Shown here in pieces: positions 11,412 through 35,750 of a DNA stretch of 64,000 nt. A program made the translations under genes and the position numbers. The first letter of the stretch is position 1; every line of letters begins with the position of its first letter. Origin of the DNA: Adineta vaga (taxonomy: Eukaryota > Animalia > Rotifera); NCBI GenBank assembly GCA_021613535.1, contig CP075493.1:4588001-4652000 (forward strand), in the 5' to 3' direction. The notes beneath the pieces were generated by a model. That model was given only the letters and a program-made list of their open reading frames with translations, did no database searches and was not told the origin of the DNA.

Positions 11412-13472
11412 ATGATCAAGAATACATCGAAAAAGAATAATAGTCAAAAACGTGTCAAACTAGAACCAGAAGCAACAACAGTAAATGTGAACGAAAAATT
11501 ATTGCCAAGTGATCCATCCATGCCTTCATTAGAGTCTCAATCAATAGAAAATCATCAAAGGTGAGAGACAAGAAAAAAAAGTACATATCATATTTTTTCT
11601 CTCAGTTGTATGAATCACTTTCGGAAAAAAAAACAGTAAAGTGTACCTATATTTCTCACATATCATTTTCTAGTCGGATGTCGTTTCAATCAATTCGATT
11701 ATGGTTACGTTTATTTATTGTTAATGATCTTACTACAATTCTTGTTCTATTTATATGGTTATTAATTAATATTGCTCTTTTTTTGGGACAATTTTTTAAT
11801 TATCATCAATCTCGTTCATATTTTTATTTACGTGTATTAATATCCGATGGTTTAGGTATTGCTCGAGCATCTGCCTTATGTTTAAATTTTAATTGTTTTC
11901 TTATTCTTTTACCTGTTTGTCGAAATTTACTTTCACTTATTCGATATATTTTACCACGATGTATAACACAATCAGTTTTTCGTCGTTTGGCTATACGTCT
12001 ATTTGATCAACATATTGGCTTTCATCGTTGTGTTGGTTATGCGATTTGTTTCTGGTCTTTGTTACATGTTGGAGCACATGTGTATAATTATGAACGTTTA
12101 ATCGATGTACATAATGATTATCAATCACTTTCATCCGTTCTAAATTTGTTATATTTAAAATCATCAGAATCTCAAGTGAATCCATTTGATAGAGTTAATC
12201 CAAATGGACTAAGTGTTGGAGCAATGTTAAGTACAACACCAGGTGTGACAGGAGTGATTCTTTGTGTTTGCTTATTGGTAATATTAAGTTCATCAACTGT
12301 ACTTATTCGTCGATCATTTTATGAAATATTTTGGTTTGTTCATCATCTTTTTATTATCTTTTTTATTTGTTTAATTATTCATGGTTTACAAGGTTTAGTT
12401 AAATCACAAACAAATCTTAATGAACATAATCCGGATATATGTGCTTCAATTTATCGTGAATGGGGTATAAATCAACAATGTCTTATCTATCCACGATTTT
12501 CAGGTTCACAAGCAACAAGTTGGATGTGGTTATGTGCACCATTAAGTCTCTATACTCTCGAACGTATTCTTCGATTTCTACGAAGTTTACAACATATAGA
12601 AATTTTAAATATCATTCGACATGAATCAAATGTTATTGAAATACGTTTTCGAAAGAAATTCATGAGTATTCCACAACCTGGTCAATATATTTATTTAAAA
12701 TGTTTTTCTATTGCTAAATTTGAATGGCATCCATTTACAGTTACTTCAGCACCAGAAGAAGAGTTTGTTAGTGTACATATACGAACAATTGGTAATTGGA
12801 CGAAGAGTTTAGCTGAAAATCTTCAAATGTATCCACAGGATATTCCACGATTAGCTGTAGATGGTCCATATGGAAGTCCAGCAGATGATGTTTTTAATTA
12901 TGATGGTGTTGTACTTGTAGGTGCAGGGATTGGAGGTAAAAATTAATAAGAATTATTTGATTTGATATTCAAAATTATCTTGTATTATTTTAGTAACACC
13001 CTATGCAGCCATATTGAAACATATTCGTTCCTCTCAATCAAGTCATGCTCGCCTTCGTCGAGTTTATTTCTATTGGATATGTAATACAACATCATGTTAT
13101 GAATGGTTTGCTGAAATGCTTCAAGAATTAGAACGTGATCTTCGTGATCGACGAAATTTTTTAACTTATAATATTTATCTTACACAATGGTCTATGGGAC
13201 AAATGCGAGCTGTTATTCAAAATAATACTGATGACAGAGATATTTGGACTGGCTTGGAAAGTAAAACACATTATGGTCGACCAAATTTTGATGTTGATTT
13301 TCAAGGAATTATAAATGAAGATTGGCAAATGGCTGAAAAACGAGATATAGGAGTGTTCGTATGTGGACCAACACCATTAGTGAAACAATTACAACGTTTA
13401 TGTATTAAAATAAACGATCAACATTCATCAACAAATAAAGTTCAATTTTATTTAAATAAAGAAAATTTTTAA
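11412..13472 (+). CDS. NADPH oxidase (NOX1-4/gp91phox-type, no EF hands)
   Basis: Heme His pairs HRCVGY...LHVGAH and HHLF...IIH; FAD motif HPFTVTS; DGPYG; GAGIG|VTPYA across the intron near 12937-12992; VFVCGP; C-terminal KENF. The 5' exon structure is approximate. Confidence 0.93.
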
Positions 13473-17948: not shown

Positions 17949-19412
17949 TTAGTTAACAGTATGACCTGCATGTTCAATTGATCCATGGATATTATCAATT
18001 TTCGTTGCACCTATAACTTTTACAGTGATTTCAATAGATCGTGCTTCACGATCACATGGTAAAAAGCCTAACGCCTTTATATAATCACCATTGATTTCGA
18101 ATTTCGATAGTACTTGTATTTCTAAATGAATCGAAGAGAAAAACAACCTATGAGTATTTTAATCGCTAGATTGCTATTATATTTATACATACCATTTCGA
18201 AGTTCGTAATCTATACTATCTAATACTTTTACAGATATTCTCACTTTTGCTGATTCTGGTGTGGCTTCTAACGATAAAACAAAATGAACACCTCCTTGTC
18301 GTATCATATTTGAATATTTTATTACATCAATACGTTGCCACATAGTCAACTGTGTACCATTACCACGCACTTCAAATGACCATTCGCCGTATGTTTCATT
18401 AGTTTTATTCGTATTTCGTATAGCAGTGATATTTGTTCGACTTGTTAATTGCCATCCATATGTTGAACCAAGTTCTGCATCACCATTAACGATAATATTT
18501 GGAGCTCGACCAAGTGTTTTTCCATCAGGAAGAATAGCATCAGCTAAAGTCAAAATTTCTTCATTGATTTGTTTATTCGACAAATCACAATCAGTCAGAT
18601 TAGCAAATGAAAAATCAACGAAACGAAGATAAGCTTCGGAGAATTTTGTATTATGCAAATTAGCTGATACAAATTCAGCAGATAAGAGTGATGCGCCTAA
18701 AACAAATTCATATAATATCTAAGTCAAACATCATTGACATGAAGAACTCACCTGCAAATGAAGCATTATTCATTTGTGTAAAACGAAAATCTGCAAAACG
18801 TAATTCTCGATTTCTAAAGGATGCATTGACTAATGATGTACCTGGTAATGCTAAATGTAATAGATAGGAACGAAAACGCCAGTCTTGTTCAACATCTAAA
18901 TTGATTCCATCTAAATTAGCACCTTCTAAACTAATCGGATCATTTCCTCTACTCAATAAACCCGAATGAAATAAAAATAAAACGATAGCGGCTTTCCTAT
19001 TTGCATCTAGTTGTCGAAGAACAGTTAATGTTTGTGGTCGAATAATATATTCTCGAACAATACGTGTTAATGTAAAATTGAACGATAATAATAACTGAGA
19101 TATCTCACGTATATAATCATCAAGTAAAGTATCTTGTCGTAATTGATCAGCTATTGTTTGTTCTTGTTGACGTTGTCGACTACTTAAATCACGATCTTGT
19201 TCTCGAGTTTTATTTGATAAGAATAAATCTTGTTCACGTTGCTTTTGAGCAAGATCAATATCATTTTCACGATTCGCTTTATTCAATTCATTCTGTTGAA
19301 TTGTTATGAAAATGGTAGCTACTGCAATTACTAATGGAATGACTATTGCAGAAATAATCTGGAATAGTTTTTCACCATTTAAACGATTATTAGAAGAATT
19401 TGGTTTCACCAT
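17949..19412 (-). CDS. Membrane-anchored pentapeptide-repeat protein with C-terminal FBA/galactose-binding-like domain (3 exons)
   Basis: N-terminal TM (IISAIVIPLVIAVATIFITI); Q/R-rich coil; A(D/N)Lxx pentapeptides (GANLDGINL, ADFRFTQMNNASF, ANLHNTKFSEAYL, ANLTDCDL); NIIVNGDAELG..GW motif. Introns 18697-18751 and 18122-18192. Confidence 0.75.
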
Positions 19413-20992: not shown

Positions 20993-21257
20993 TTAATCTC
21001 GACGTTTATAACTGGGTGCTTTTGTTACTATATCATTACCATCTGTGACGCACACGACACGATATGGATCATACATTCGATTTTCTATACCATTTGGTGC
21101 ATTGTAAGGATTTAAATCTATCGAAAAAGAATCGAAATCAAATGATAACTACGACTTTCTTGTAATTATTCTTACTGTTATCATATTGGCGAATAGCTGT
21201 CGATGCTTCTTCAAATGTTTTTCCAACTAATTCAGGCCATTCTTTGTTTCCCGACAT
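20993..21257 (-). CDS. Potato inhibitor I family (I13, CI-2/eglin-like) serine protease inhibitor, copy 1
   Basis: Spliced (intron 21118-21175): MSGNKEWPELVGKTFEEASTAIRQYDNNLNPYNAPNGIENRMYDPYRVVCVTDGNDIVTKAPSYKRRD*. Hallmarks WPELVG and DxxRV...V..P. Confidence 0.85.
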
Positions 21258-21664
21258 TATTTTATGTTAATAAAAGAAAATGCTCGTATTTGTTGTACGC
21301 TTTAATAAAAACTTTCACTATTTTATGTCTACGTGTCCTTGTTCTATGCAATGCTTTATATTTAATAGTATTAGTCTGATTTTTTTTTCTTCTTTTCTCT
21401 TTGAAAAATGAAGAGGCGAGAAAGAGAAAAGAAATAAATACTTGATATATCCCTATCGTTCGTTTACGAATAGAAAAACAAAACTGTCAACATAGAGAAA
21501 GAATGTAAAAGTTAACTTCTTGAAAATGTATGCATTTATCTGCATATTCAAACTTTGCATGTATATTTACTTTAAAAATATAAGTAGAAGATAATTTATC
21601 AAAACAAATATGAATTAGTAATTGAAAAGTATCTTTAAATTCTGTGTTTGGAAATAAATTTGCT

Positions 21665-21920
21665 TTAATGATATCTATATTGTGGTGGAATAGTTACAAC
21701 ATCAGCTTCATTTGTTATGCATACAACACGTTTCGGATCGAACATTCGATTTTCCATACCATTTCTTGCATTGTAAGGATGTAGACCTATGAATACAGTA
21801 GAAAAAAAAGAAGCTTTCAATTCAATAATAATTTTTACTATGATCAAATGCAAGAATTGCATAGGATGCTTCGGCAAATGTTCGTCCAACTAATTCTGGC
21901 CATACTTTATTTCCGGACAT
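21665..21920 (-). CDS. Potato inhibitor I family serine protease inhibitor, copy 2
   Basis: Spliced (intron 21787-21838, same position as copy 1): MSGNKVWPELVGRTFAEASYAILAFDHSLHPYNARNGMENRMFDPKRVVCITNEADVVTIPPQYRYH*. Confidence 0.85.
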
Positions 21921-22347
21921 TATTTCAAGTGTATAGTTAAGAAAAACAAGGTAAACGTTGATATAATATGATACTTTTCAAATGTATTTTTGTCGTATGT
22001 AATCGATATAGAGTCACATGCGTTCTTCGTATTCGAAAAAGTAAAGAAAAGAATAAATATTAACATCCTCTCGTTTGACTTGTCTAACCATTACTCTACC
22101 AACAAAAAGTGTAGGATCAACTTGTTGTTTTTTAATCTAAGTATCGTTTATGTATCGAATAGATGGGTAATCATATATTTACCTCTCATGGTGACTCACG
22201 GAACGTCAGAAAAACGAAAAGAAATCATTCATCATGTGATATATCTAAGAAAATATTTATCATAAATAATCTGATCAGACATTGAAGGATATTTACAATC
22301 TTTTCGAGTTAATTTTATTCAAAAATAAATGAGAAAATGTAAACTTT

Positions 22348-22660
22348 TTATATCAAAGTTATTTTCCAGTATTCACCACTATATTTTGCATACGTGAATT
22401 CGTTTCTACATGCAACACTATCTTGATACTTTAGGTGTTAGAAAGCAGCATATGACTGCAGCATTTTCTACACTTTCTGTCACACTAGAAAGATAGAGCA
22501 CATTAAATCATTTCTATAGTTCAATTTACCTTATGCTTAGATGACCTTTCATTTCACCCTGTGTGTCGATCCATAATGGAATATCATGTGGACGAAGACA
22601 TCGATAAACAGCAGGTACAATTGCTTGACTATTCCATTGATATGATAACATAACATGACT
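22348..22660 (-). pseudogene. TIR (TIR_2-type) domain gene relic
   Basis: HVMLSYQWNSQAIVPAVYRCLRPHDIPLWIDTQGEMKGHLSI|SVTESVENAAVICCFLTPK, then +1 frameshift to YQDSVACRNEFTYAK. Intron 22485-22529; no clear start. Confidence 0.7.
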
Positions 22661-22905
22661 CTATTGGGATTTCAATATGTCATTTCATCATATACAATTT
22701 TTGTTCAAGTTAAGAGATCTTCTCATCTTAGATCCATGTATTAGTCTGACAAGAGTGATGTACGAAAATCAAAATTTGAAGATAATTTACTGTGAAACAA
22801 TATTTCATGCATTGAAAGAGAACAAAAATTCGAATGAAATGAAAACGAGGTGAGAAGAGTGAATTCATATCGATGAAACTTGAGGTGGAAGTTTGTTCTA
22901 ATTTA

Positions 22906-25197
22906 TTAAGATAGTGTAGATAGTTTAGGATTAAATTCAAAAGCGAGCCAAATGTCAAATGATTGGTCCGATGGCGAAATATAGTTAGACCATTTTGGCC
23001 AAGATCTTTGCAAATGTGTTTTTGTTATGTTAACTTGTGCAGCTGATTGCCATTTATGCCAAGGATATACGACGGTACCATTTTCACGTAATACAGGTTG
23101 TTTATGTTTATCAATATCCCATAGAGGACCATGCTCATATAATGACGGAACATCTAATTGAATAAATTTGGAATCTGATGTTGTAAGTGGATCGTAAGAT
23201 TCGTTGGAATCTTCAAGATATTGCATACCACTTTTCTTATTTCCATTAATGATACAGGCATGAACCTCACAAAAACGATCCGTTGCGTGATTATGTACAC
23301 CAGCATTTACACCTTTTCCTGCAGCCCATAGTTGAATATGACATAAATGTTCATTATTATCATCAAAATTGATATTAACACCCTTGAGATTGTAAAATTC
23401 TAAATCTTGAAAGTTTTCCTTTCCCCATTCGAGTTGATCAACTCGAACAAATTTGAAATCAAATTGACGAGCCTCGTTTGAATACTGTTCAGGTAATATG
23501 TTTTCCGTGATAATCTTTTGAATATTATCAAATTGAGGAATATCACTGATACCGTCCGGCATTTGTAAAACAATAAAAACAGCACCTTCATCATTTGTTT
23601 TAATTTTATCATCATCGCTTTGTATTTTAAGTGAACAAATACTTTTGGGTTCACATAAAAACTGACGGGCATATTTTGTCGAAGAATTTGTCCAACTTAA
23701 AATTCCCCATAGAACCTTAATATAAGTATTTTTGTTGATTTGTCGTGAACTATTAGGTGGTAAGATTTCTAATGATAAAGTTATATTTCCTATTTTTAAG
23801 AATGGCAATACTTGATATTGAATTGCTTGATTTGGTCTTGGAACAGTGACTACAAGTTCATCATGTTCTTTTGTTACTTGTAATTGTTTTCGATTTTCTA
23901 ATTTTTTCCGATTGAATCGATTATAGAAAATATTCAATGAAGAATCTTCTGCCATATGATAGCCAGGTACATAATAACTAATAGTGGCAAAATCTAATAA
24001 ACCATCATAATCAAAGTCTGCAATAGCAATTCTAGCAGCAGATTGATCACTAACTTTCCATTTAGCAAATAAACCACGAGAAAGATCGATTGCTTTGTAA
24101 TAGTAAACACCTTCATTAGGTGCTGGTCCACGAAGTGCAACTAAGAATTCATCATCACCATCATTATCCAAATCAGCACAAACGATATAATGACTTGGAC
24201 CTTCACCATTTTGATTAGGATATCCATATATATCTAAAATATATCTTTCCCAACGAATTTGTGTTAATGAATTATTGATATTCTTTATGTAAACAGCAAC
24301 AACGTTTCCATGAAATGGTTCCAATGCAGCAATGTAAGCAAAAGAATCATTTCCAATTTTTCCAATATCGACACCACCACTACCATAAAAGTTCGTTTGT
24401 TGTTTATCTTCTTGTTCACCATCAGAAATATGTTCAATGATCCATTTGGAAGATTTCGGATGATAGGAAAGCCAATTGAGTCCTTCACGTGATGCAATAA
24501 GAAGACTATCTAATGAATTTGTATGGAATTTTTTTGCATCATGAATTATATGAAAATAATCTTTATTAATTATTTCACGTTTCCATACTGTAGCATTTAA
24601 CACATTATCAGGTTGTCGAAATAATAATACAGGTACTGGAACATCGAATGGTCCATTAACAAGAGGTAGACCAATAACTTCCCAACGTTCGTTTTGAGTA
24701 AAATGACCAATTTTAAGTCGATGCATTGTTGGTGATTTACCAACATAATGTTGTTTCCAATGTTCTTTACTTACGTTTTGTCCTGGATTTTCTAACCATA
24801 CAATATGTCCTCCATTTGGATTAAAATCCGTCATTGTGTTACCATAGTCAAAGCAAATAATAATATCCTTTAAACCATTTCCAGTAATATCAGCTTGATC
24901 TATAGCTACGGGACTGAGTAATTTTTGAATGTGAATCGGTTCGATATTTCCTATAGTTGCACTTGGATTTGGATAGAGCTTGATTTCTCCATGTCTAAGT
25001 CCATATGCTATAAAACCAATAGGCGTATGATTATTCGATTGAAAAGCTTCAATCCAATATCCATCTTGAATATCATCATCAATAGTTTGTCTTTCAAACG
25101 AAGGATTGTAACTTCCTTTATCATTGTAATGCAACGCAACATGTAACGGGAGTAAAAGAAAACATAAATTTAACAAATAATGCCTGATATTCATCAT
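22906..25197 (-). CDS. Aldos-2-ulose dehydratase/isomerase (AUDH)-like: beta-propeller plus cupin, predicted signal peptide
   Basis: Intronless ~763 aa from MMNIRHYLLNLCFLLLPLHVALH. Propeller motifs DGYWIEAF, ADITGNGLKD, WLENPG, MHRLKIGHF, EPFHGN, ADLDNDGDDEFLVALRGP, DFATISYYVPGY. Cupin motifs GVHNH, FCEVHACIING, YEHGPLW, VVYPWHKWQ, WLAFEF, as I recall from fungal AUDH. Confidence 0.85.
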   Translation of the reverse strand: MMNIRHYLLNLCFLLLPLHVALHYNDKGSYNPSFERQTIDDDIQDGYWIEAFQSNNHTPIGFIAYGLRHGEIKLYPNPSATIGNIEPIHIQKLLSPVAIDQADITGNGLKDIIICFDYGNTMTDFNPNGGHIVWLENPGQNVSKEHWKQHYVGKSPTMHRLKIGHFTQNERWEVIGLPLVNGPFDVPVPVLLFRQPDNVLNATVWKREIINKDYFHIIHDAKKFHTNSLDSLLIASREGLNWLSYHPKSSKWIIEHISDGEQEDKQQTNFYGSGGVDIGKIGNDSFAYIAALEPFHGNVVAVYIKNINNSLTQIRWERYILDIYGYPNQNGEGPSHYIVCADLDNDGDDEFLVALRGPAPNEGVYYYKAIDLSRGLFAKWKVSDQSAARIAIADFDYDGLLDFATISYYVPGYHMAEDSSLNIFYNRFNRKKLENRKQLQVTKEHDELVVTVPRPNQAIQYQVLPFLKIGNITLSLEILPPNSSRQINKNTYIKVLWGILSWTNSSTKYARQFLCEPKSICSLKIQSDDDKIKTNDEGAVFIVLQMPDGISDIPQFDNIQKIITENILPEQYSNEARQFDFKFVRVDQLEWGKENFQDLEFYNLKGVNINFDDNNEHLCHIQLWAAGKGVNAGVHNHATDRFCEVHACIINGNKKSGMQYLEDSNESYDPLTTSDSKFIQLDVPSLYEHGPLWDIDKHKQPVLRENGTVVYPWHKWQSAAQVNITKTHLQRSWPKWSNYISPSDQSFDIWLAFEFNPKLSTLS

Positions 25198-26024
25198 ATA
25201 AGATGAAAAACAAACTGATTGTAACAAGAGAACGACATGATTACAGTTTGAATGTAATTCAAATTTATACAAAATAGCAGTTCCTCAAATGAAATAACAT
25301 ATTCTGATGCCTGACATTTAATCACTTCCAGAATTCTTAAGCCGTCATAGATTGAGAACTATTTAGAATATCGCTTTGTCCTCTTTTGATATTTACAAAG
25401 GATTCATATGATATTCACAGACATCTACAGACTAAATCATACTGTACATAGACTCAATAAAATTTGAATGAAAGAATGCATTTCAATCACATCATGATAC
25501 CAGATGATTTATTAAAATATAAAAGATACTGTCTCATAATTGCAAATCAGTCTATCACTCTCAATAATACCAACAATTAAATATCATTGTATCACGGCTA
25601 CCATCTATAGAAAATCAGTATGTATGAAAATATGAACATTGATTATGTTTCTTTCGAGTCTAAAATCCAGATTTTATTCGACGGAGAACTATTCTTGAAA
25701 TTAAAGTTCACTTGCCACAGTCATATTTTCGGTTTCAGAGCCATACTATGACCTGTAGTCTTCATCATCATAGAAAAAAACCACAATCTTATTAATAAAC
25801 GGAAGTATCATCGATGGCAAATAGTAAATCTAAAATCATAGTTTAACAATGAAAGCATTCGATACATCTATGAACTTTATTTACGAATTAACATTGAAAA
25901 AATGTTTTCGGAAGTGGTTTAGGTATGACACAAACGTCAATAGATGCGACGTGCAAAATGACGTCATTGTATCTTATCTATAAAAAGAAGATAGATAATT
26001 CGGTTCGAATCAATAAGTATACGA

Positions 26025-27797
26025 ATGGATAATCATCAAATAAGAAAAGGAAATCCAAAAGTTTTATTACGATTCTTTAGTGAACAATTTCACAAAAAGA
26101 ATGACTCCATTGGAGAACAATCGTTATTATCATCACAAACGGTAAGAAAAATTGGAACTATTGACGATTCACCATTATTTGCATTTACGGCAATTGAATC
26201 AAAAGAAAAAGATTCAACAAATGACAATTTCATTTCTTCACAAAAACCGCCTCACACATTAGTTGAAACACGTTTAAATCTTCATCGTGATATGAGATCT
26301 GGAAGTCAAAGATTTCGATGGAATTTAGTATTTAATTTGTTATTTTGGTTGATCGTGCCATTTCCATTTTGGATACCTTTTGTATCAAATGATATTGCCT
26401 TCATTTTGTTACCATCTATTCAAGCCATATTTGTTTTCATGTGGACAAGTAAGTACCATTTAATTTAGTTAATCTTTGAAATTTTCGATTTCATCTTTAT
26501 AAGTTATTGCTGTATTGGCTTTAAAAAATGCCTTGATTTTATATAAAAATCGTTTTCATAATTTTACCGACGATTATGTTAATCATAAACATGTATCAAT
26601 TCGTCATATCATTGCCATTAGTTGTTATAAAGAATCCGTAGAACTTATTGCTAAAAGTATTCAAACATTAGCAAATCAAACTGAAGTACATCGAATAACG
26701 ATGGTTATCTCCTTTGAACAGCGAACACCAGATAAAGAAAACAAATGTAAAATATTACAAGAAAAATTTCAAAATAGTGGCTTTCAACAGATTATATTCA
26801 CTATTCATCCATTTGGTTTACCGAACGAAATTCCAGGCAAATGTTCCAATGCAAATTATGGTCTTCGTACAGCTGTAAAAGAGATGGGTATTACTGATAA
26901 TGAAACAGATGATATTCTGATAACTACATGCGATGCAGATTCACAATTTCCACCTCAATATATTGCAGCTTTAACAAGCAAATATTTAAATGAAAATCGT
27001 CCCTCATTAACTACAATCTATCAATCACCTCTATTCTACAATTGGAAATTAGATAGTCTTTCATTTGTTACACGTGTAACAGGTTTATTACGAAGTTTTC
27101 TTATGTTAGGTGGATTGATTCCATTTAATATCAATACGATGAGTATATTTTCATTTTCATTAAGTCTGGCAAAGAAAGGTTATTATATTCATCCAAGTTA
27201 TCAGATGGATGATATTATTTGTCTTATTCGTTGGATGGGAGTTACACAACAACGATTGAGAATATCAATGATACCTGTACCGGTATTAAGTGGACCAACA
27301 TCAGGAGAAACCATTGAAATGGAAATCATAGAATGGGCAAGACAAGCTCGACGATGGACAATTGGAGCAGCCGAAGTCTTTCATTATTTTATGGTAAAAA
27401 CAAAACGAATACCAAAAATGGCTGCTTGTTCTTGGGGACTAGTTTTCATTATCTATTATGGTATTCCTTATGTACTGCTGGTCTATATGGTCTAACTTCG
27501 ATGATATCAATGTATTTTCTTGTCAAAAATGTTCCATTATTAATCATCTATCTCATGTACAGTTTATTCGCTGTACAAATGTTAACATTTTCTGTTGCAT
27601 TCATCATTGATATATTTATTCCTAAACTATTACATGTCGAGGAATGTATTTGTATTCTTCGAAATTTCTTTCATTTTATAATGACTCCATTTGTATTATT
27701 AGCATATTCATTGGTAGAATTTTATGCCTTACATGAAATTATTATTTATGGTAAAAAAGTGTGTAAACATGGTGCATCAACTAAAAATGTGCTTTAA
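26025..27797 (+). CDS. Membrane glycosyltransferase family 2, processive type (D,D,D,QxxRW); apparent 1-nt frameshift near 27466
   Basis: Intron 26449-26503 joins ORFs. Motifs CYKE, EIPGKCSN, TCDADS, QMDD, QARRW; N- and C-terminal TMs. The frame switches at attcctta (27463-27470) into ORF 27333-27797. Confidence 0.8.
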
Positions 27798-28836: not shown

Positions 28837-30100
28837 ATGCACATCGTTTTTCTTCTATTGTTCATTTCTATTATGAAAAGCGAAGAATTCATTCTACAAT
28901 TTCCTCCATCACTATCTACATTTGAAGAGGCTTTACATGATGCATATATTCCTGGTATTGTTGCAATAGTAATCAATCGTAATGATATTCTCTATAATCA
29001 AGCGATTGGATATCATTCACCAATAATTTCTAATGAACGTCAATCAATGGATTCAGAAAAATCTGTTTTCGTATTGGCATCCATATCGAAAACATTCGTT
29101 TCTGTAGCTGTTATGCAATTGGTCGAATCGAAACAATTAAATTTAGATACAGATATCAATAGTTATCTATCATCGGTTATGAAAATTATTCATCCGTTAC
29201 ACTCAACTATTCCAATTACGTTACGACATTTACTTTCGCATACAGCTGGTATTAAATCAAATTTTGAAGAAGAACTTAAACATTATCAACCAACAGATGA
29301 TTTTCTAAAATCAAATCTCTCTGAAACTATTTCAAAATATTTATCGAATAAATTCAATTGGTCATCTCAATCACCTGGTAATATTACTGAATATTCCAAC
29401 ATTGGTATTAGTTTAGCTGCATTGATTGTCGAACTTGTAACACATACAACATTTGAACAATATGTACAAGATAGAATTCTAAAACATTTAGGTATTTATG
29501 AACATGAAGCTGGATATAGAATTAGTAATTTCGAAAATCGAAAAGAAGATCTTGTCGAACATTATATTTATAATGCTTCGTGGTTAGAACAATTTCATCA
29601 ACTAGTACCGCAATTAAACATCGTTCAAGTATACATTTCATTTAGAAAACTATATTTAATTATTATTATTATTCTAGGCTAAGAATTCATCCGATTGGTT
29701 GTATGTTCCTCACTATGGTGCAAAAGATTATCCCGCCGGTAGTCTTCGTATGTCTGCTCATTCACTTGCTATTTTTCTTCAATCATTTCTAAATGATTTT
29801 CCAACATTGTTACAAAACTCTTCCTCAGTCGACGAAATGCTTCGAATTGTTCGACATAAAGATTCTGATGTTGATTATGGTCTCGTTTGGAATTGGCGAC
29901 GAATAAACGGACGATATTTAGTTGGACATCGAGGTGCAGTACCGGGTGTTACTAATATCATGATGGCCAATGAAAAACGAACACTCGGTGTGATTATTTT
30001 ATCAAATGGTGATATTACTAAAAATGATGATCAAGCAAAAAGAGTGTATGAAACAATTATTAATATCATGTCAAAACTATTCGATTATTTCGAAAAATAA
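28837..30100 (+). CDS. Secreted beta-lactamase/PBP-fold serine hydrolase (class C/AmpC-like family)
   Basis: Signal peptide; SxxK (ASISKT), LLSHTAG, YSN, HRG triad. Intron 29629-29677 joins the two ORFs in frame. Confidence 0.9.
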
Positions 30101-34139: not shown

Positions 34140-35750
34140 ATGATACGTTCGAATTACAGTCGTTGGAGATCATTATGTCTACCATATGGTCTTATTTATA
34201 CTTTTCTTAGTATAATTATTCTATGTCTAATAATTCTAACTATAATCTTTTCAAATTTCAAACATACTTCTACGACATCCACATCACTTCGTACTGTTAT
34301 CAATGATCTTATTGGTTCTCCATTACATTTCTCTAAAGATGATCAATATGTACATTGGACATTTTTGCATATGAATGATATTTACGAATTATTACCACTC
34401 GATCATGGACGTAAAGGTGGTTTAGCACGTGTTGCTTATGTTCGTCAATTATTAAAAGAAGAAAATCCACATACATATACAATTCTTGCTGGTGATCTTC
34501 TTTCTCCATCAGCATTGAGTTCATCAAAAGTCAATGGAACAAATTTAAATGGTAAACAAATGATTGCAACAATGAATACACTCGGTCTTGATTTGATGAC
34601 ATTTGGAAATCATGAATTTGATTTAACTGAAAATGATTTACTTACACGAATGAATGAATCAACATTTACATGGATTAGTTCTAATGTCTTTCGAAAAGAT
34701 TCAAATAAATTATTTGGTTCAAGTATTTCACATAAAATTATTACGATTGATACAGTTCGAATACTTTTCATTGGTTTAACGATTGATGATAATCAACCTT
34801 ATGTTCATATTATCAATCGATCATCACTTATTACTTATGTTCAACAATATTTACATCAATTTCCTAATGGAACATATGATATTCTTGTTGCTATAACTCA
34901 TTTAGATAAATCATTGGATATAAAACTTGCTAAACAAATTCCTCAAATTGATTTAATTCTTGGTGGACATGAACATGAAAATCAATATTATGTTCGAGGA
35001 TATCAACAAACATCTATTTATAAAGCTGATGCAAATGCATTCACAGTCTATATACTTCGTTGTTCATATAATTTAAAAACGAAACAATTTCATATCTATC
35101 CAACTTTATCTCGAATCACATCGGACATTCCTGAAGAAGAAAAAACAGCTCAGATAGCTAATTATTGGTTTAATTTAGGTATTGAAGGATTTCGTACATT
35201 AGGTTTTGAAGTACATGATATTGTTTCATGTCTTCCATCAAATATTGAATTAGATGGTCGATCGGAATCCATACAAATCTTTTCAACACATTTAACTGAT
35301 TTAATTTGTCAAAGTATGATTAAAGCAACTGAATCAACTCAAACAACGATTGGTTTCTTTAAAACTGGTACAATTCGTATCGATGATATTCTTCGTGGTA
35401 CAATTACACAATATGATATTTTACGTACATTACCTTTCACAAATTATGTTCAAAGTCTGTCAATATCTGGTAGATTACTTGCACAAATCTTGAGTGAAAA
35501 TTCATCACAACGAAGAAAAGGTTCATTACTTGTTTATGTTGGAGTCGAAACATTCGATCATGGTCAAACATGGTTAGTTGATGGAATGAATATTTTAACT
35601 AGTAATCGAAATTATCGTATTGCAACAACGGATTATACATATCGACGACTTGATTTAAATGATTCAGATGTCAATTTTTTATCAAAAAGTAATTTAACCC
35701 TTTCAAAATGTTTTATTGAGTATTTAAAAATAAAATATCCACCTTGTTGA
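34140..35750 (+). CDS. Type II membrane 5'-nucleotidase (metallophosphoesterase plus 5'-NT C-terminal domain), intronless
   Basis: N-terminal TM; HMNDIYE, GGLARVA, AGDLLSPS, GNHEFD, THL, GGHEH; C-domain TGTIRID and DILRTLPF. Confidence 0.92.
   Translation: MIRSNYSRWRSLCLPYGLIYTFLSIIILCLIILTIIFSNFKHTSTTSTSLRTVINDLIGSPLHFSKDDQYVHWTFLHMNDIYELLPLDHGRKGGLARVAYVRQLLKEENPHTYTILAGDLLSPSALSSSKVNGTNLNGKQMIATMNTLGLDLMTFGNHEFDLTENDLLTRMNESTFTWISSNVFRKDSNKLFGSSISHKIITIDTVRILFIGLTIDDNQPYVHIINRSSLITYVQQYLHQFPNGTYDILVAITHLDKSLDIKLAKQIPQIDLILGGHEHENQYYVRGYQQTSIYKADANAFTVYILRCSYNLKTKQFHIYPTLSRITSDIPEEEKTAQIANYWFNLGIEGFRTLGFEVHDIVSCLPSNIELDGRSESIQIFSTHLTDLICQSMIKATESTQTTIGFFKTGTIRIDDILRGTITQYDILRTLPFTNYVQSLSISGRLLAQILSENSSQRRKGSLLVYVGVETFDHGQTWLVDGMNILTSNRNYRIATTDYTYRRLDLNDSDVNFLSKSNLTLSKCFIEYLKIKYPPC

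Follow-up and report, generated by a model that had tools for sequence, protein, structure and literature searches.

A putatively horizontally acquired, leader-bearing aldos-2-ulose dehydratase homologue from Adineta vaga, a bdelloid rotifer

In fungi, aldos-2-ulose dehydratase (AUDH) converts 1,5-anhydrofructose to microthecin and glucosone to cortalcerone. The His155 of the Phanerochaete chrysosporium enzyme (PDB 4A7K, 4A7Y and 4A7Z) was reportedly proposed by Claesson and colleagues in 2012 to be the catalytic base. We compared this enzyme with the predicted product of a gene of Adineta vaga located in a stretch of 64,000 nucleotides (hereafter the window) and found that the two can be aligned from end to end, with the propeller followed by the cupin domain, an equivalent of His155 and the cupin pattern HxH...E.H...H. 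Unlike the fungal enzyme, the rotifer protein has no C-terminal lectin domain, carries an N-terminal leader and contains about 19 extra residues ahead of the last conserved strand, and its host is an animal without a fungal-type pyranose 2-oxidase. The two-domain AUDHs of Ascomycota (Colletotrichum, Fusarium, Chaetomium and others; ~700-800 aa) share the lectin-less layout and are of similar length, but they are only 33-37% identical to the rotifer protein, lack a leader and belong to a fungal clade which includes Basidiomycota and excludes the rotifer genes. The stand-alone propellers of bacteria (~425 aa; Xenorhabdus, Streptomyces, Caballeronia and others) keep H159, H219, E238, H296 and H336 of the rotifer enzyme but are not fused to an AUDH cupin domain. 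Within bdelloids themselves, the horizontally acquired NRPS/PKS genes resemble the AUDH gene in their non-metazoan origin, in being HGT candidates and in being reduced on entering desiccation (PMC11258130), whereas they encode megasynthases and not a single sugar-converting enzyme.

The assignment to AUDH made in the first-pass annotation was confirmed when the HMMER comparison with the AUDH profiles proposed there was carried out. The Pfam profile AUDH_beta_propeller (PF22301) matched aa 129-306 with an E-value of 2.5e-59 (200.5 bits against a cut-off of 27) and AUDH_Cupin (PF18637) matched aa 439-756 with an E-value of 1.1e-91 (307.9 bits, cut-off 25; 3-308 of the 308 profile positions), and FG-GAP_3 was also matched in the propeller half. 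In addition, aa 31-755 aligned by HMMER with residues 19-731 of the P. chrysosporium AUDH chain 4a7k (E 8.3e-137). The AF2 model (mean pLDDT 89.4; pTM 0.65) folded aa 34-426 into 28 propeller strands that form 7 sets of 4, and its best Foldseek matches were 4a7z, 4a7y and 4a7k (E 3e-67, 751 columns, 34% identity). The domains of the model agreed with those of 4a7k one by one, whereas their arrangement relative to each other differed (TM 0.52, rmsd 15 A). Judged from the sequence, the identity of the rotifer protein as an AUDH can be considered secure, the match being far beyond chance. The first-pass annotation had also pointed to the apparent lack of the C-terminal lectin domain. The absence was verified, since the protein ends 8 residues beyond WLAFEF, the last aligned strand, and the alignment to 4a7k revealed no counterpart of the lectin domain (chain residues ~740-900). 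However, the absence does not set the rotifer protein apart: in the list of fungal homologues the lectin domain PF14200 is confined to two Lentinula proteins (~880 aa), most of the others being ~700-800 aa long, and the lectin-less state is thus usual in the AUDH family.

The histidine-containing motifs highlighted earlier are all present and lie on conserved columns. They were located at aa 158-161 (MHRL), 217-220 (IIHD), 294-298 (PFHGN) and 334-337 (PSHY) in the propeller and at aa 635-637 (HNH), 644-646 (EVH) and 688-691 (EHGP) in the cupin domain, and each of them includes a His or Glu conserved to 90% or more across 23 rotifer and 31 fungal homologues, the propeller motifs showing the same degree of conservation in 27 bacterial homologues. 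The alignment of homologues revealed H159, H219, E238, H296 and H336 as invariant or nearly so. Counted in the HMMER alignment, H159, H219, H296 and H336 correspond to His155, His215, His295 and His337 of P. chrysosporium AUDH, and these four are invariant or at least 97% conserved among the aligned homologues. In the cupin domain, conservation among rotifers and fungi reaches 96% or more for each of H635, H637, E644, H646, E688 and H714, which are also present in a viral homologue described below. Thus, the residues do align with those of a characterised AUDH, 4a7k, which had been named as the point on which the assignment could fail, and both predicted metal sites of the A. vaga enzyme keep every conserved His and Glu. 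The zinc ligands of the propeller are predicted from this conservation and from the literature.

Table 1. Features of the A. vaga AUDH locus (positions in the window).
Feature	Position	Strand	Basis
AUDH homologue CDS, complete and intronless	22906..25197	minus	763 aa + stop at 22906-22908; ORF list, Pfam, PDB 4a7k, AF2/Foldseek
N-terminal hydrophobic leader MMNIRHYLLNLCFLLLPLHVALHY (aa 1-24), signal-peptide-like	25126..25197	minus	Kyte-Doolittle, homologue comparison, AF2
Seven-bladed beta-propeller, predicted dehydratase site (aa ~33-430)	23908..25101	minus	Pfam and AF2
Codon of His159 (in MHRL)	24721..24723	minus	aligned with P. chrysosporium His155; invariant in 61 aligned homologues
AUDH cupin domain, predicted isomerase site (aa 439-756)	22930..23883	minus	Pfam AUDH_Cupin
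Cupin metal motif HNHATDRFCEVH (aa 635-646)	23260..23295	minus	aligns with HNHVEASFCEIH of 4a7k
AATAAA polyadenylation-type hexamer	22902..22907	minus	overlaps stop codon; read directly from sequence
Cover by RNA-like contigs of run X4, unspliced	22849..25140	minus	three contigs (22849-23982, 23984-24168, 24220-25140), no joints

In the assembly of A. vaga (100.8 Mb, 6 contigs) the gene occurs at one locus only, and its reading frame is intact and intronless, as had been claimed at first sight, with 763 uninterrupted codons (Table 1). The longest open frame in the ORF list spans 22906..25272 on the minus strand and opens at TTG, the first ATG being at 25197. The NCBI protein I4U23_001490, predicted on an 18.1-Mb A. 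vaga contig, is 99% identical to the product of this frame; in its model, splicing removes the 42 conserved residues at the C-terminal end, and TIR-like exons are appended at 22424-22660. We rejected the spliced model because an RNA-like contig of run X4 continues, unspliced, across the donor site of this model (about 23034) and beyond the stop codon, and the added TIR-like exons are not covered by such contigs. The contigs of this run, which is presumably RNA, end at 22849, 57 nt past the AUDH stop codon, and leave 22104-22839 and 25232-26151 uncovered; on the neighbouring gene they skip 58 and 53 nt, which we read as introns. The word depth was about 5-6 on the AUDH frame in comparison to 24-177 on the neighbouring gene. 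These contigs are evidence that the A. vaga AUDH gene is transcribed, and that its transcript is unspliced. Published data also indicate that the gene is regulated: in Supplementary Data 5 of Nowell et al. 2024 (PMC11258130), the sheet 'Entering down' includes both A. vaga genes that have GO:0033991 (2 of 2), and both are HGT candidates. These two genes, AVAG|g18725 and g21720, are presumably the haplotypes of this locus. As the animals enter desiccation, both drop more than 4-fold, alongside NRPS/PKS genes, which the authors term constitutively expressed in hydrated animals. Among the rows listed in the tables of that study, the AUDH term occurred in the desiccation sheets only, and AUDH is not discussed in its main text.

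The named homologues of the A. vaga protein come from bdelloids, fungi and bacteria only. In our trees the bdelloid AUDHs formed one clade (99/96) and the fungi another (97/86), the bacterial propeller-only proteins were the outgroup (100/100), and further trees repeated this topology. The bdelloid clade was joined (98/94) by an AUDH encoded on a giant-virus-like, 82-kb metagenome contig (P0030; ENA ERZ25039475 contig_51218, locus L018), and the two together were sister to the Dikarya. The family was gained by bdelloids once, before the split of Adineta and Rotaria, and was duplicated later. With non-metazoan nearest relatives, the A. vaga gene appears to have been acquired by horizontal transfer and is integrated, ameliorated and expressed. 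A fungal donor nested in Dikarya is unsupported by the trees, in which the rotifer clade lies outside Asco- and Basidiomycota as their sister. A bacterial donor could be suspected from the propeller, which is 46-50% identical to the bacterial proteins in comparison to 36-45% to the fungal ones, but it was rejected by the same trees: the two-domain proteins are one clade, and therefore the fungal branches are simply longer. Stand-alone AUDH cupins of bacteria were sought by a word search with the cupin half, which returned only rotifer fragments and one 30% match, and by scanning 185,579 prokaryotic genomes for a pattern; the scan returned none and, based on a single pattern, was a weak test.

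The viral protein is the nearest non-rotifer relative of the bdelloid AUDHs (45% identity), its placement being less sure because of its long branch and AT-biased composition. Like the rotifer enzyme it consists of the same two domains without the lectin domain; unlike it, the viral protein has no leader (N-terminus MYSPDF) and is adjoined by a lyase-type GH31 gene, located 62 bp away and divergently transcribed. GH31 alpha-1,4-glucan lyases are recognised by an Asn (N459 of PDB 2X2I) that replaces an Ile (PMC12441222), and in the viral GH31 this Asn is part of TNIT, the same motif as in the Gracilariopsis glucan lyase. This pairing was counted in favour of a link to 1,5-anhydrofructose. IMG/VR scans did not reveal further viral AUDHs. 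The viral GH31-AUDH pair would amount to an anhydrofructose pathway encoded by a virus and could have been a vehicle of transfer. A more far-reaching scenario, which we consider quite unlikely as a whole, is that giant viruses carry this lyase-AUDH cassette to make antimicrobial pyrones from host glycogen or starch, and that such a viral gene is the ancestor of the bdelloid AUDH, the rotifers having kept the AUDH half, added a leader, duplicated the gene and come to convert dietary 1,5-anhydrofructose extracellularly to microthecin-type defence compounds.

We consider it probable that A. vaga possesses a functional, horizontally acquired and leader-bearing AUDH which would act on 2-keto sugars. 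With 1,5-anhydro-D-fructose or glucosone as substrate, the propeller zinc would polarise the keto group at C2 and His159 would take the C3 proton, leading to dehydration to ascopyrone M or to the glucosone equivalent. The cupin metal site would then isomerise the dehydrated product to microthecin or cortalcerone. The bdelloid-specific leader would route the enzyme to the secretory pathway, so that the reaction may take place in the gut lumen, in a gland secretion or in the medium. The substrate could be supplied by the diet (fungi, algae, bacteria) or by a minor elimination side reaction of ordinary GH31 glucosidases, with no dedicated rotifer lyase or oxidase.

The source of the substrate is the point at which the microthecin/cortalcerone pathway proposed by the first-pass annotation finds no support, as the search of the genome for pyranose 2-oxidase and GH31 glucan lyase recovered neither of these known suppliers. 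The best match to the fungal-type pyranose 2-oxidase profile (TIGR02462) covered 63 residues and scored 24.2 bits, the cut-off being 544.9. The six-frame search revealed about 20 GH31 loci, none of which is of the lyase type. Those that could be aligned have Ile or Met at the diagnostic site (motif xIxDP), except for two very weak alignments and one locus (L033), the only one with Asn. The latter is alpha-xylosidase-like (best PDB match 7wj9); it is spliced, and its two exon ORFs were searched separately and unjoined. The best A. vaga match to the viral lyase-type GH31 was 32% over 314 aa, and two of the A. vaga GH31 genes are intronless, one being glucosidase-like and the other xylosidase-like. 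The supply of the substrate is therefore speculative, and an antibiotic-making pathway in A. vaga is plausible, though unproven. Both the substrate and an antimicrobial role of the rotifer AUDH are putative.

The same chemistry could serve another purpose, namely the disposal or salvage of reactive 2-keto sugars arising from digestion or from GH31 side reactions, with no antibiotic being made. The absence of a dedicated substrate-producing enzyme from the genome is in line with this. GH31 glucosidases, including animal GANAB and GANC, yield small amounts of 1,5-anhydrofructose (PMC12441222), and passages in PMC12441222 and PMC6629992 describe this sugar as a glycating agent and a by-product of GH31 glucosidases, ER glucosidase II included, which the numerous GH31 loci of A. 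vaga could produce. Expression in hydrated, feeding animals that is lowered on entering desiccation would fit as well. However, microthecin and ascopyrones are reactive too, and antibacterial action is ascribed to them (PMC12441222), and therefore the conversion by AUDH would be odd as a detoxification. Moreover, AUDH declines alongside the NRPS/PKS genes, and the pairing of the viral relative with a lyase implies purposeful production. Thus, we regard disposal or salvage as a realistic but minority possibility.

The hydrophobic N-terminus remarked upon earlier was borne out, with a hydrophobic stretch of 16 residues (aa 7-22) reaching a Kyte-Doolittle 9-residue maximum of 2.73. The leader begins with a basic n-region (R5), and AF2 modelled aa 3-24 as a low-confidence helix. 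Comparable leaders occur in all full-length members of the bdelloid subclade of the A. vaga gene, in which position, length and hydrophobicity are kept and the sequence is not. Hydrophobic leaders were absent from the 31 fungal, 27 bacterial and the viral homologues, so that only bdelloid copies have one. With this signal-peptide-like leader, the A. vaga AUDH may be secreted. If the leader were not a cleaved signal peptide, the enzyme would be membrane-anchored or cytosolic and therefore nothing extracellular would be made. This is suggested by the poor -3/-1 pattern of the A. vaga copy (Ala at -1 but His at -3 if cleaved after Ala21), by the leaderless bdelloid paralogues (P0011, P0013, P0016, P0019, P0023 and P0025) and by the short, non-hydrophobic N-termini of the fungal homologues. 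At the same time, the leader is maintained in every full-length member of the orthologous subclade, several bdelloid copies show the small residues that are typical of positions -3 and -1 (ALA|Q, AHG|D, AFG|Q), and a 16-residue core is short for a membrane anchor. We regard an uncleaved leader as rather unlikely.

It is also conceivable that the substrate has drifted and that the rotifer enzyme works on some other keto-sugar or glycoside, as is probably true of the stand-alone propellers of bacteria. The rotifer protein is only 34-38% identical to fungal AUDHs overall and 27-35% in the cupin half, and AF2 revealed a rotifer-specific, low-confidence insertion near the C-terminus (aa 726-735). 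Its propeller is nearer to the bacterial proteins, whose cassette comprises Epimerase_2 (UDP-GlcNAc-2-epimerase-like), a ~245-aa protein with weak AUDH-cupin similarity, the propeller and sometimes short-chain dehydrogenases, indicating a different sugar pathway. However, the conserved His and Glu of both sites are all kept, the viral sister gene is paired with a lyase-type GH31, and the trees put the rotifer proteins with the two-domain fungal enzymes and not with bacteria. Substrate drift is thus distinctly improbable.

The preferred reading, a functional AUDH of the rotifer itself, is also favoured by the signs of selection and of host origin. In comparison to the intronless A. steineri orthologue, dN was 0.226 and dS 0.94 (dN/dS ~0.24), and the gene is under purifying selection. 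The GC content of the frame is 32.6% in comparison to 30.4% in the window, and GC3 (17.7%) matches the AT-rich host. Reads had been named earlier as a possible means of exposing contaminant DNA; instead, the DNA runs from 2013 cover the frame and both flanks with even depth, next to a spliced neighbour gene. Intronless orthologues and paralogues occur across Adineta and Rotaria. Although the gene is intronless, has non-metazoan nearest relatives, shows low RNA-like cover and has 12 protein-changing differences among the 18 allelic ones listed (weakly below the neutral expectation), a mis-assembled fungal, bacterial or viral contaminant is rejected and a decaying, functionless relic is extremely improbable, given its position 4.6 Mb along an 18-Mb chromosome, i.e., in the interior, the even depth in independent runs, the host-like GC3, orthologues in at least seven bdelloid species assemblies, the intact and constrained frame, and its transcription and regulation.

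That bdelloids acquire genes horizontally is well established, and this one had already been labelled by automatic annotation; the advance is therefore an incremental one until activity has been demonstrated. The dataset of PMC11258130 lists two A. vaga AUDH genes as HGT candidates. We found no paper discussing AUDH in an animal; an Echinococcus paper returned by the full-text literature search does not have AUDH in its main text. Being single-copy, intronless and easily expressed, the A. vaga gene offers a clean testable case. Should the enzyme prove active and secreted, bdelloids would possess a route to sugar-derived small-molecule antimicrobials beside their horizontally acquired NRPS/PKS, which, if true, would bear on the way in which an ancient asexual lineage deals with pathogens.

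The minus-strand ORF in the window (see table) encodes 763 residues from its first ATG, and its identity as an aldos-2-ulose dehydratase/isomerase (AUDH) is secure. Pfam profiles recognised AUDH_beta_propeller (2.5e-59), FG-GAP_3 and a full-length AUDH_Cupin (1.1e-91), and all propeller and cupin motifs quoted in the first-pass annotation were found, each on conserved columns; the prokaryotic NCBIfam library gave no match. Residues 31-755 aligned with 19-731 of the 900-residue Phanerochaete chrysosporium chain 4a7k (E 8.3e-137). The AlphaFold2 model (alignment of 61 homologues, mean pLDDT 89.4) contained seven four-stranded groups (28 strands) ahead of the cupin part, and the top three Foldseek matches were three AUDH entries (E 3e-67, 751 columns). 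The TM score to these structures was only 0.52 and the rmsd 15 Å, which we read as a different domain arrangement in the predicted model.

We take His155 of Phanerochaete AUDH to act as the base for dehydration at the propeller zinc site, and the cupin domain presumably carries a second zinc site and performs the isomerisation. Counted in the 4a7k alignment, His155 falls in MHRLK, at His159 of the rotifer protein. We aligned 23 rotifer, 31 fungal and 27 bacterial sequences and also compared P0030, an AUDH from a giant-virus-like metagenome contig. The propeller residues H159, H219, E238, H296 and H336 and the cupin residues H635, H637, E644, H646, E688 and H714 were at least 90% conserved in each group having the domain, and all are present in the viral protein. 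The catalytic and metal positions thus align with AUDH, although the assignment of individual residues as metal ligands is putative. Activity on 1,5-anhydrofructose or glucosone is predicted and likely. The lectin domain is indeed absent, as noted earlier, but this is no distinguishing feature because most homologues also lack it.

Coordinates of the features discussed (positions in the window unless a locus is named)
Feature	Position	Strand	Remark
AUDH ORF	22906..25272	minus	ORF list; first ATG at 25197
TIR-like coding fragment (HVMLSYQWNSQ...)	22424-22660	minus	stops in frame between pieces; no X4 cover
Small spliced gene	~21000-22100	minus	exon 1 at 21138-21257
Alternative haplotype	25476-25478		one base replaced by 35-nt insert
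Neighbouring ORFs	11561-12946, 18122-19412, 26515-27495, 28837-29682, 34140-35750		several look non-metazoan
Long intronless A. vaga GH31	L004:949-3312	minus	
Long intronless A. vaga GH31	L005:1183-3273	minus	
Viral GH31 and AUDH (P0030)	L018:7047-12067		divergent (opposite strands), 62 bp apart
Bacterial gene pair and propeller	L017:6050-9278, L027:6034-9278		Xenorhabdus, Streptomyces

The NCBI model, I4U23_001490, cuts the protein after WQSAAQ and continues into two small exons at 22660-22424, losing FDIWLAFEF, a strand conserved throughout the orthologues and shared with the fungal structure. The RNA nature of the 2018 run X4 was inferred from its behaviour; its contigs left intergenic stretches uncovered and showed 58- and 53-nt skips in the adjoining minus-strand gene, the first with CT..AC ends (GT..AG on the minus strand). 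Three X4 contigs covered 22849-25140 without any joint, and a contig crossed the proposed donor and the stop codon unbroken, ending 57 nt past the stop, which an AATAAA hexamer overlaps. Given this unspliced contig and the conserved strand that the spliced model removes, we set that model aside and take the uninterrupted ORF as the AUDH gene; the TIR-like fragment is probably a gene remnant drawn into an annotation chimera. Exon 1 of the small spliced gene nearby matched the potato inhibitor I family (E 4.6e-5); X4 skips there (21117>21176 and 21783>21837) were read as introns, and X4 contig depth was much higher than over AUDH.

A contaminant origin, raised in the first-pass annotation as a possible refutation, was excluded by host-like GC (ORF 32.6%, GC3 17.7%; window 30.4%), even depth over the ORF and both flanks in two 2013 runs, as for genomic DNA, the chromosomal site and the orthologues. 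The A. vaga assembly (100.8 Mb, 6 contigs; window at C1:4588001-4652000) holds both AUDH domains at this one locus only. In a word search the closest protein was I4U23_001490 (99% identical, A. vaga, 18.1-Mb contig), followed by Adineta steineri and five Rotaria species (55-67%), P0030 (45%), fungi (33-38%) and bacterial propeller-only proteins. The A. steineri orthologue also lacks introns, and the pair gave dN 0.226 and dS 0.94 (Nei-Gojobori; ratio ~0.24, with dS near saturation). Reads differed from the assembly at ~1-2% of positions over the ORF, and the DNA runs X2 and X3, together with run X1, carried the alternative haplotype upstream of the start.

The propeller half matched bacterial stand-alone propellers at 46-50% versus 36-45% for fungal AUDH. 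Despite this, trees with the bacterial proteins as root put all two-domain proteins in one group. Support (ultrafast bootstrap/SH-aLRT) in the careful IQ-TREE analysis of 45 rows and 774 columns was 100/100 for the bacterial propeller-only proteins, 99/96 for the bdelloid sequences, 98/94 for bdelloids plus P0030 and 97/86 for fungal monophyly; quick trees agreed. The horizontal origin of the gene is secure. The groupings imply a single entry of the family into bdelloids, ahead of the Adineta-Rotaria split, followed by duplication; A. vaga retains one locus. The placement of P0030 needs caution because of its long branch and odd composition. In Xenorhabdus and Streptomyces two conserved genes precede the stand-alone AUDH-type propeller gene, first a UDP-GlcNAc-2-epimerase-like gene and then one for a ~245-aa protein whose weak resemblance to the core of the AUDH cupin is motif-specific (LW.A..G..HN...F.EVH, YPWH; E 3e-4 in Pfam, under the cut-off), which suggests a split counterpart of the fused eukaryotic enzyme. 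The ORFs neighbouring AUDH in the window include NADPH-oxidase/ferric-reductase, two pentapeptide-repeat, weak GT2-like, beta-lactamase-family and 5'-nucleotidase types.

P0030 lies on an 82-kb contig (ENA ERZ25039475 contig_51218; 37% GC, 85% coding density) among genes for RNA polymerase Rpb5, a D5-type primase-helicase, an ATP-dependent DNA ligase, helicases, HNH endonucleases, a TnpB-like protein and a MutS with a C-terminal HNH domain. Our reading is a mimivirus-like giant virus; no capsid gene was seen in the 22 kb examined. For the adjacent 963-residue GH31, alpha-1,4-glucan lyase 2x2h was the only single-stretch, near full-length PDB match (E 1.6e-58). Glucan lyases carry Asn459 at the position that Ile occupies in glycosidases (PMC12441222), and the viral protein carries this Asn in a TNIT motif, as in the algal lyase (register set by the nucleophile Asp553). 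The nearest relative of the rotifer clade is thereby tied to 1,5-anhydrofructose, and the two genes, which also occur together on a 6.9-kb Logan contig, form a candidate anhydrofructose pathway encoded by a virus.

The pathway drawn by the first-pass annotation, with a lyase or oxidase feeding AUDH, is absent from A. vaga, since neither a fungal-type pyranose 2-oxidase nor a lyase-type GH31 was found in the genome. The pyranose 2-oxidase family model gave only 24-bit tails against a cut-off of 545, and the best match to the viral lyase-type GH31 was 32% over 314 residues. There are ~20 GH31 loci, and the aligned ones have Ile or Met at the Asn459 position, except two very weak alignments and L033, an alpha-xylosidase-like locus with Asn (its two exon ORFs were searched separately, not joined). 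Of the two long intronless loci, L004 and L005, one is alpha-glucosidase-like and the other has a 405-bit match to bacterial alpha-xylosidase MeXyl31; both may likewise be carbohydrate enzymes gained by horizontal transfer. The AUDH substrate could come from food or from the elimination side reaction known for GH31 glucosidases (PMC12441222).

The hydrophobic N-terminus reported earlier was confirmed: a stretch of 31 residues, 16 of which form a hydrophobic core, precedes the conserved SYxPxFE start. A similar leader occurs in all full-length subclade members (P0002, P0004, P0006, P0007, P0008, P0014) and in several other bdelloid paralogues, several with classical small residues at -3 and -1, whereas a second bdelloid paralogue set, 31/31 fungal and 27/27 bacterial proteins and P0030 have short, non-hydrophobic N-termini. 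Being absent from fungal, viral and bacterial proteins, the leader is a bdelloid innovation. It looks like a signal peptide, and secretion is predicted as probable, with an imperfect predicted cleavage site in A. vaga. Leader-bearing copies (P0006-P0008, P0014, P0017, P0018, P0021, P0026) and leaderless ones (P0011, P0013, P0016, P0019, P0023, P0025), some starting MGTSFSQ or MGTP... in the manner of an N-myristoylation start, suggest that family members act in more than one compartment.

A published reanalysis of A. vaga RNA-seq compared hydrated animals with animals entering desiccation (PMC11258130; fold change >4, FDR <1e-3). Its Supplementary Data 5 reports the GO enrichment of HGT candidates for abiotic stress, and GO:0033991 (aldos-2-ulose dehydratase activity; 2/2 genes, FDR 0.0012) appears there in the sheet 'Entering down', beside NRPS/PKS terms; the GO term is absent from the paper's text, which describes NRPS/PKS genes as constitutively expressed in hydrated controls. 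We infer that the two genes, AVAG|g18725.t1 and g21720.t1, are two haplotypes of the single A. vaga AUDH locus. The gene, which already carries an automatic-annotation label, adds a new and so far unstudied animal member to a known enzyme family, and it sits in a lineage famous for gene acquisition.
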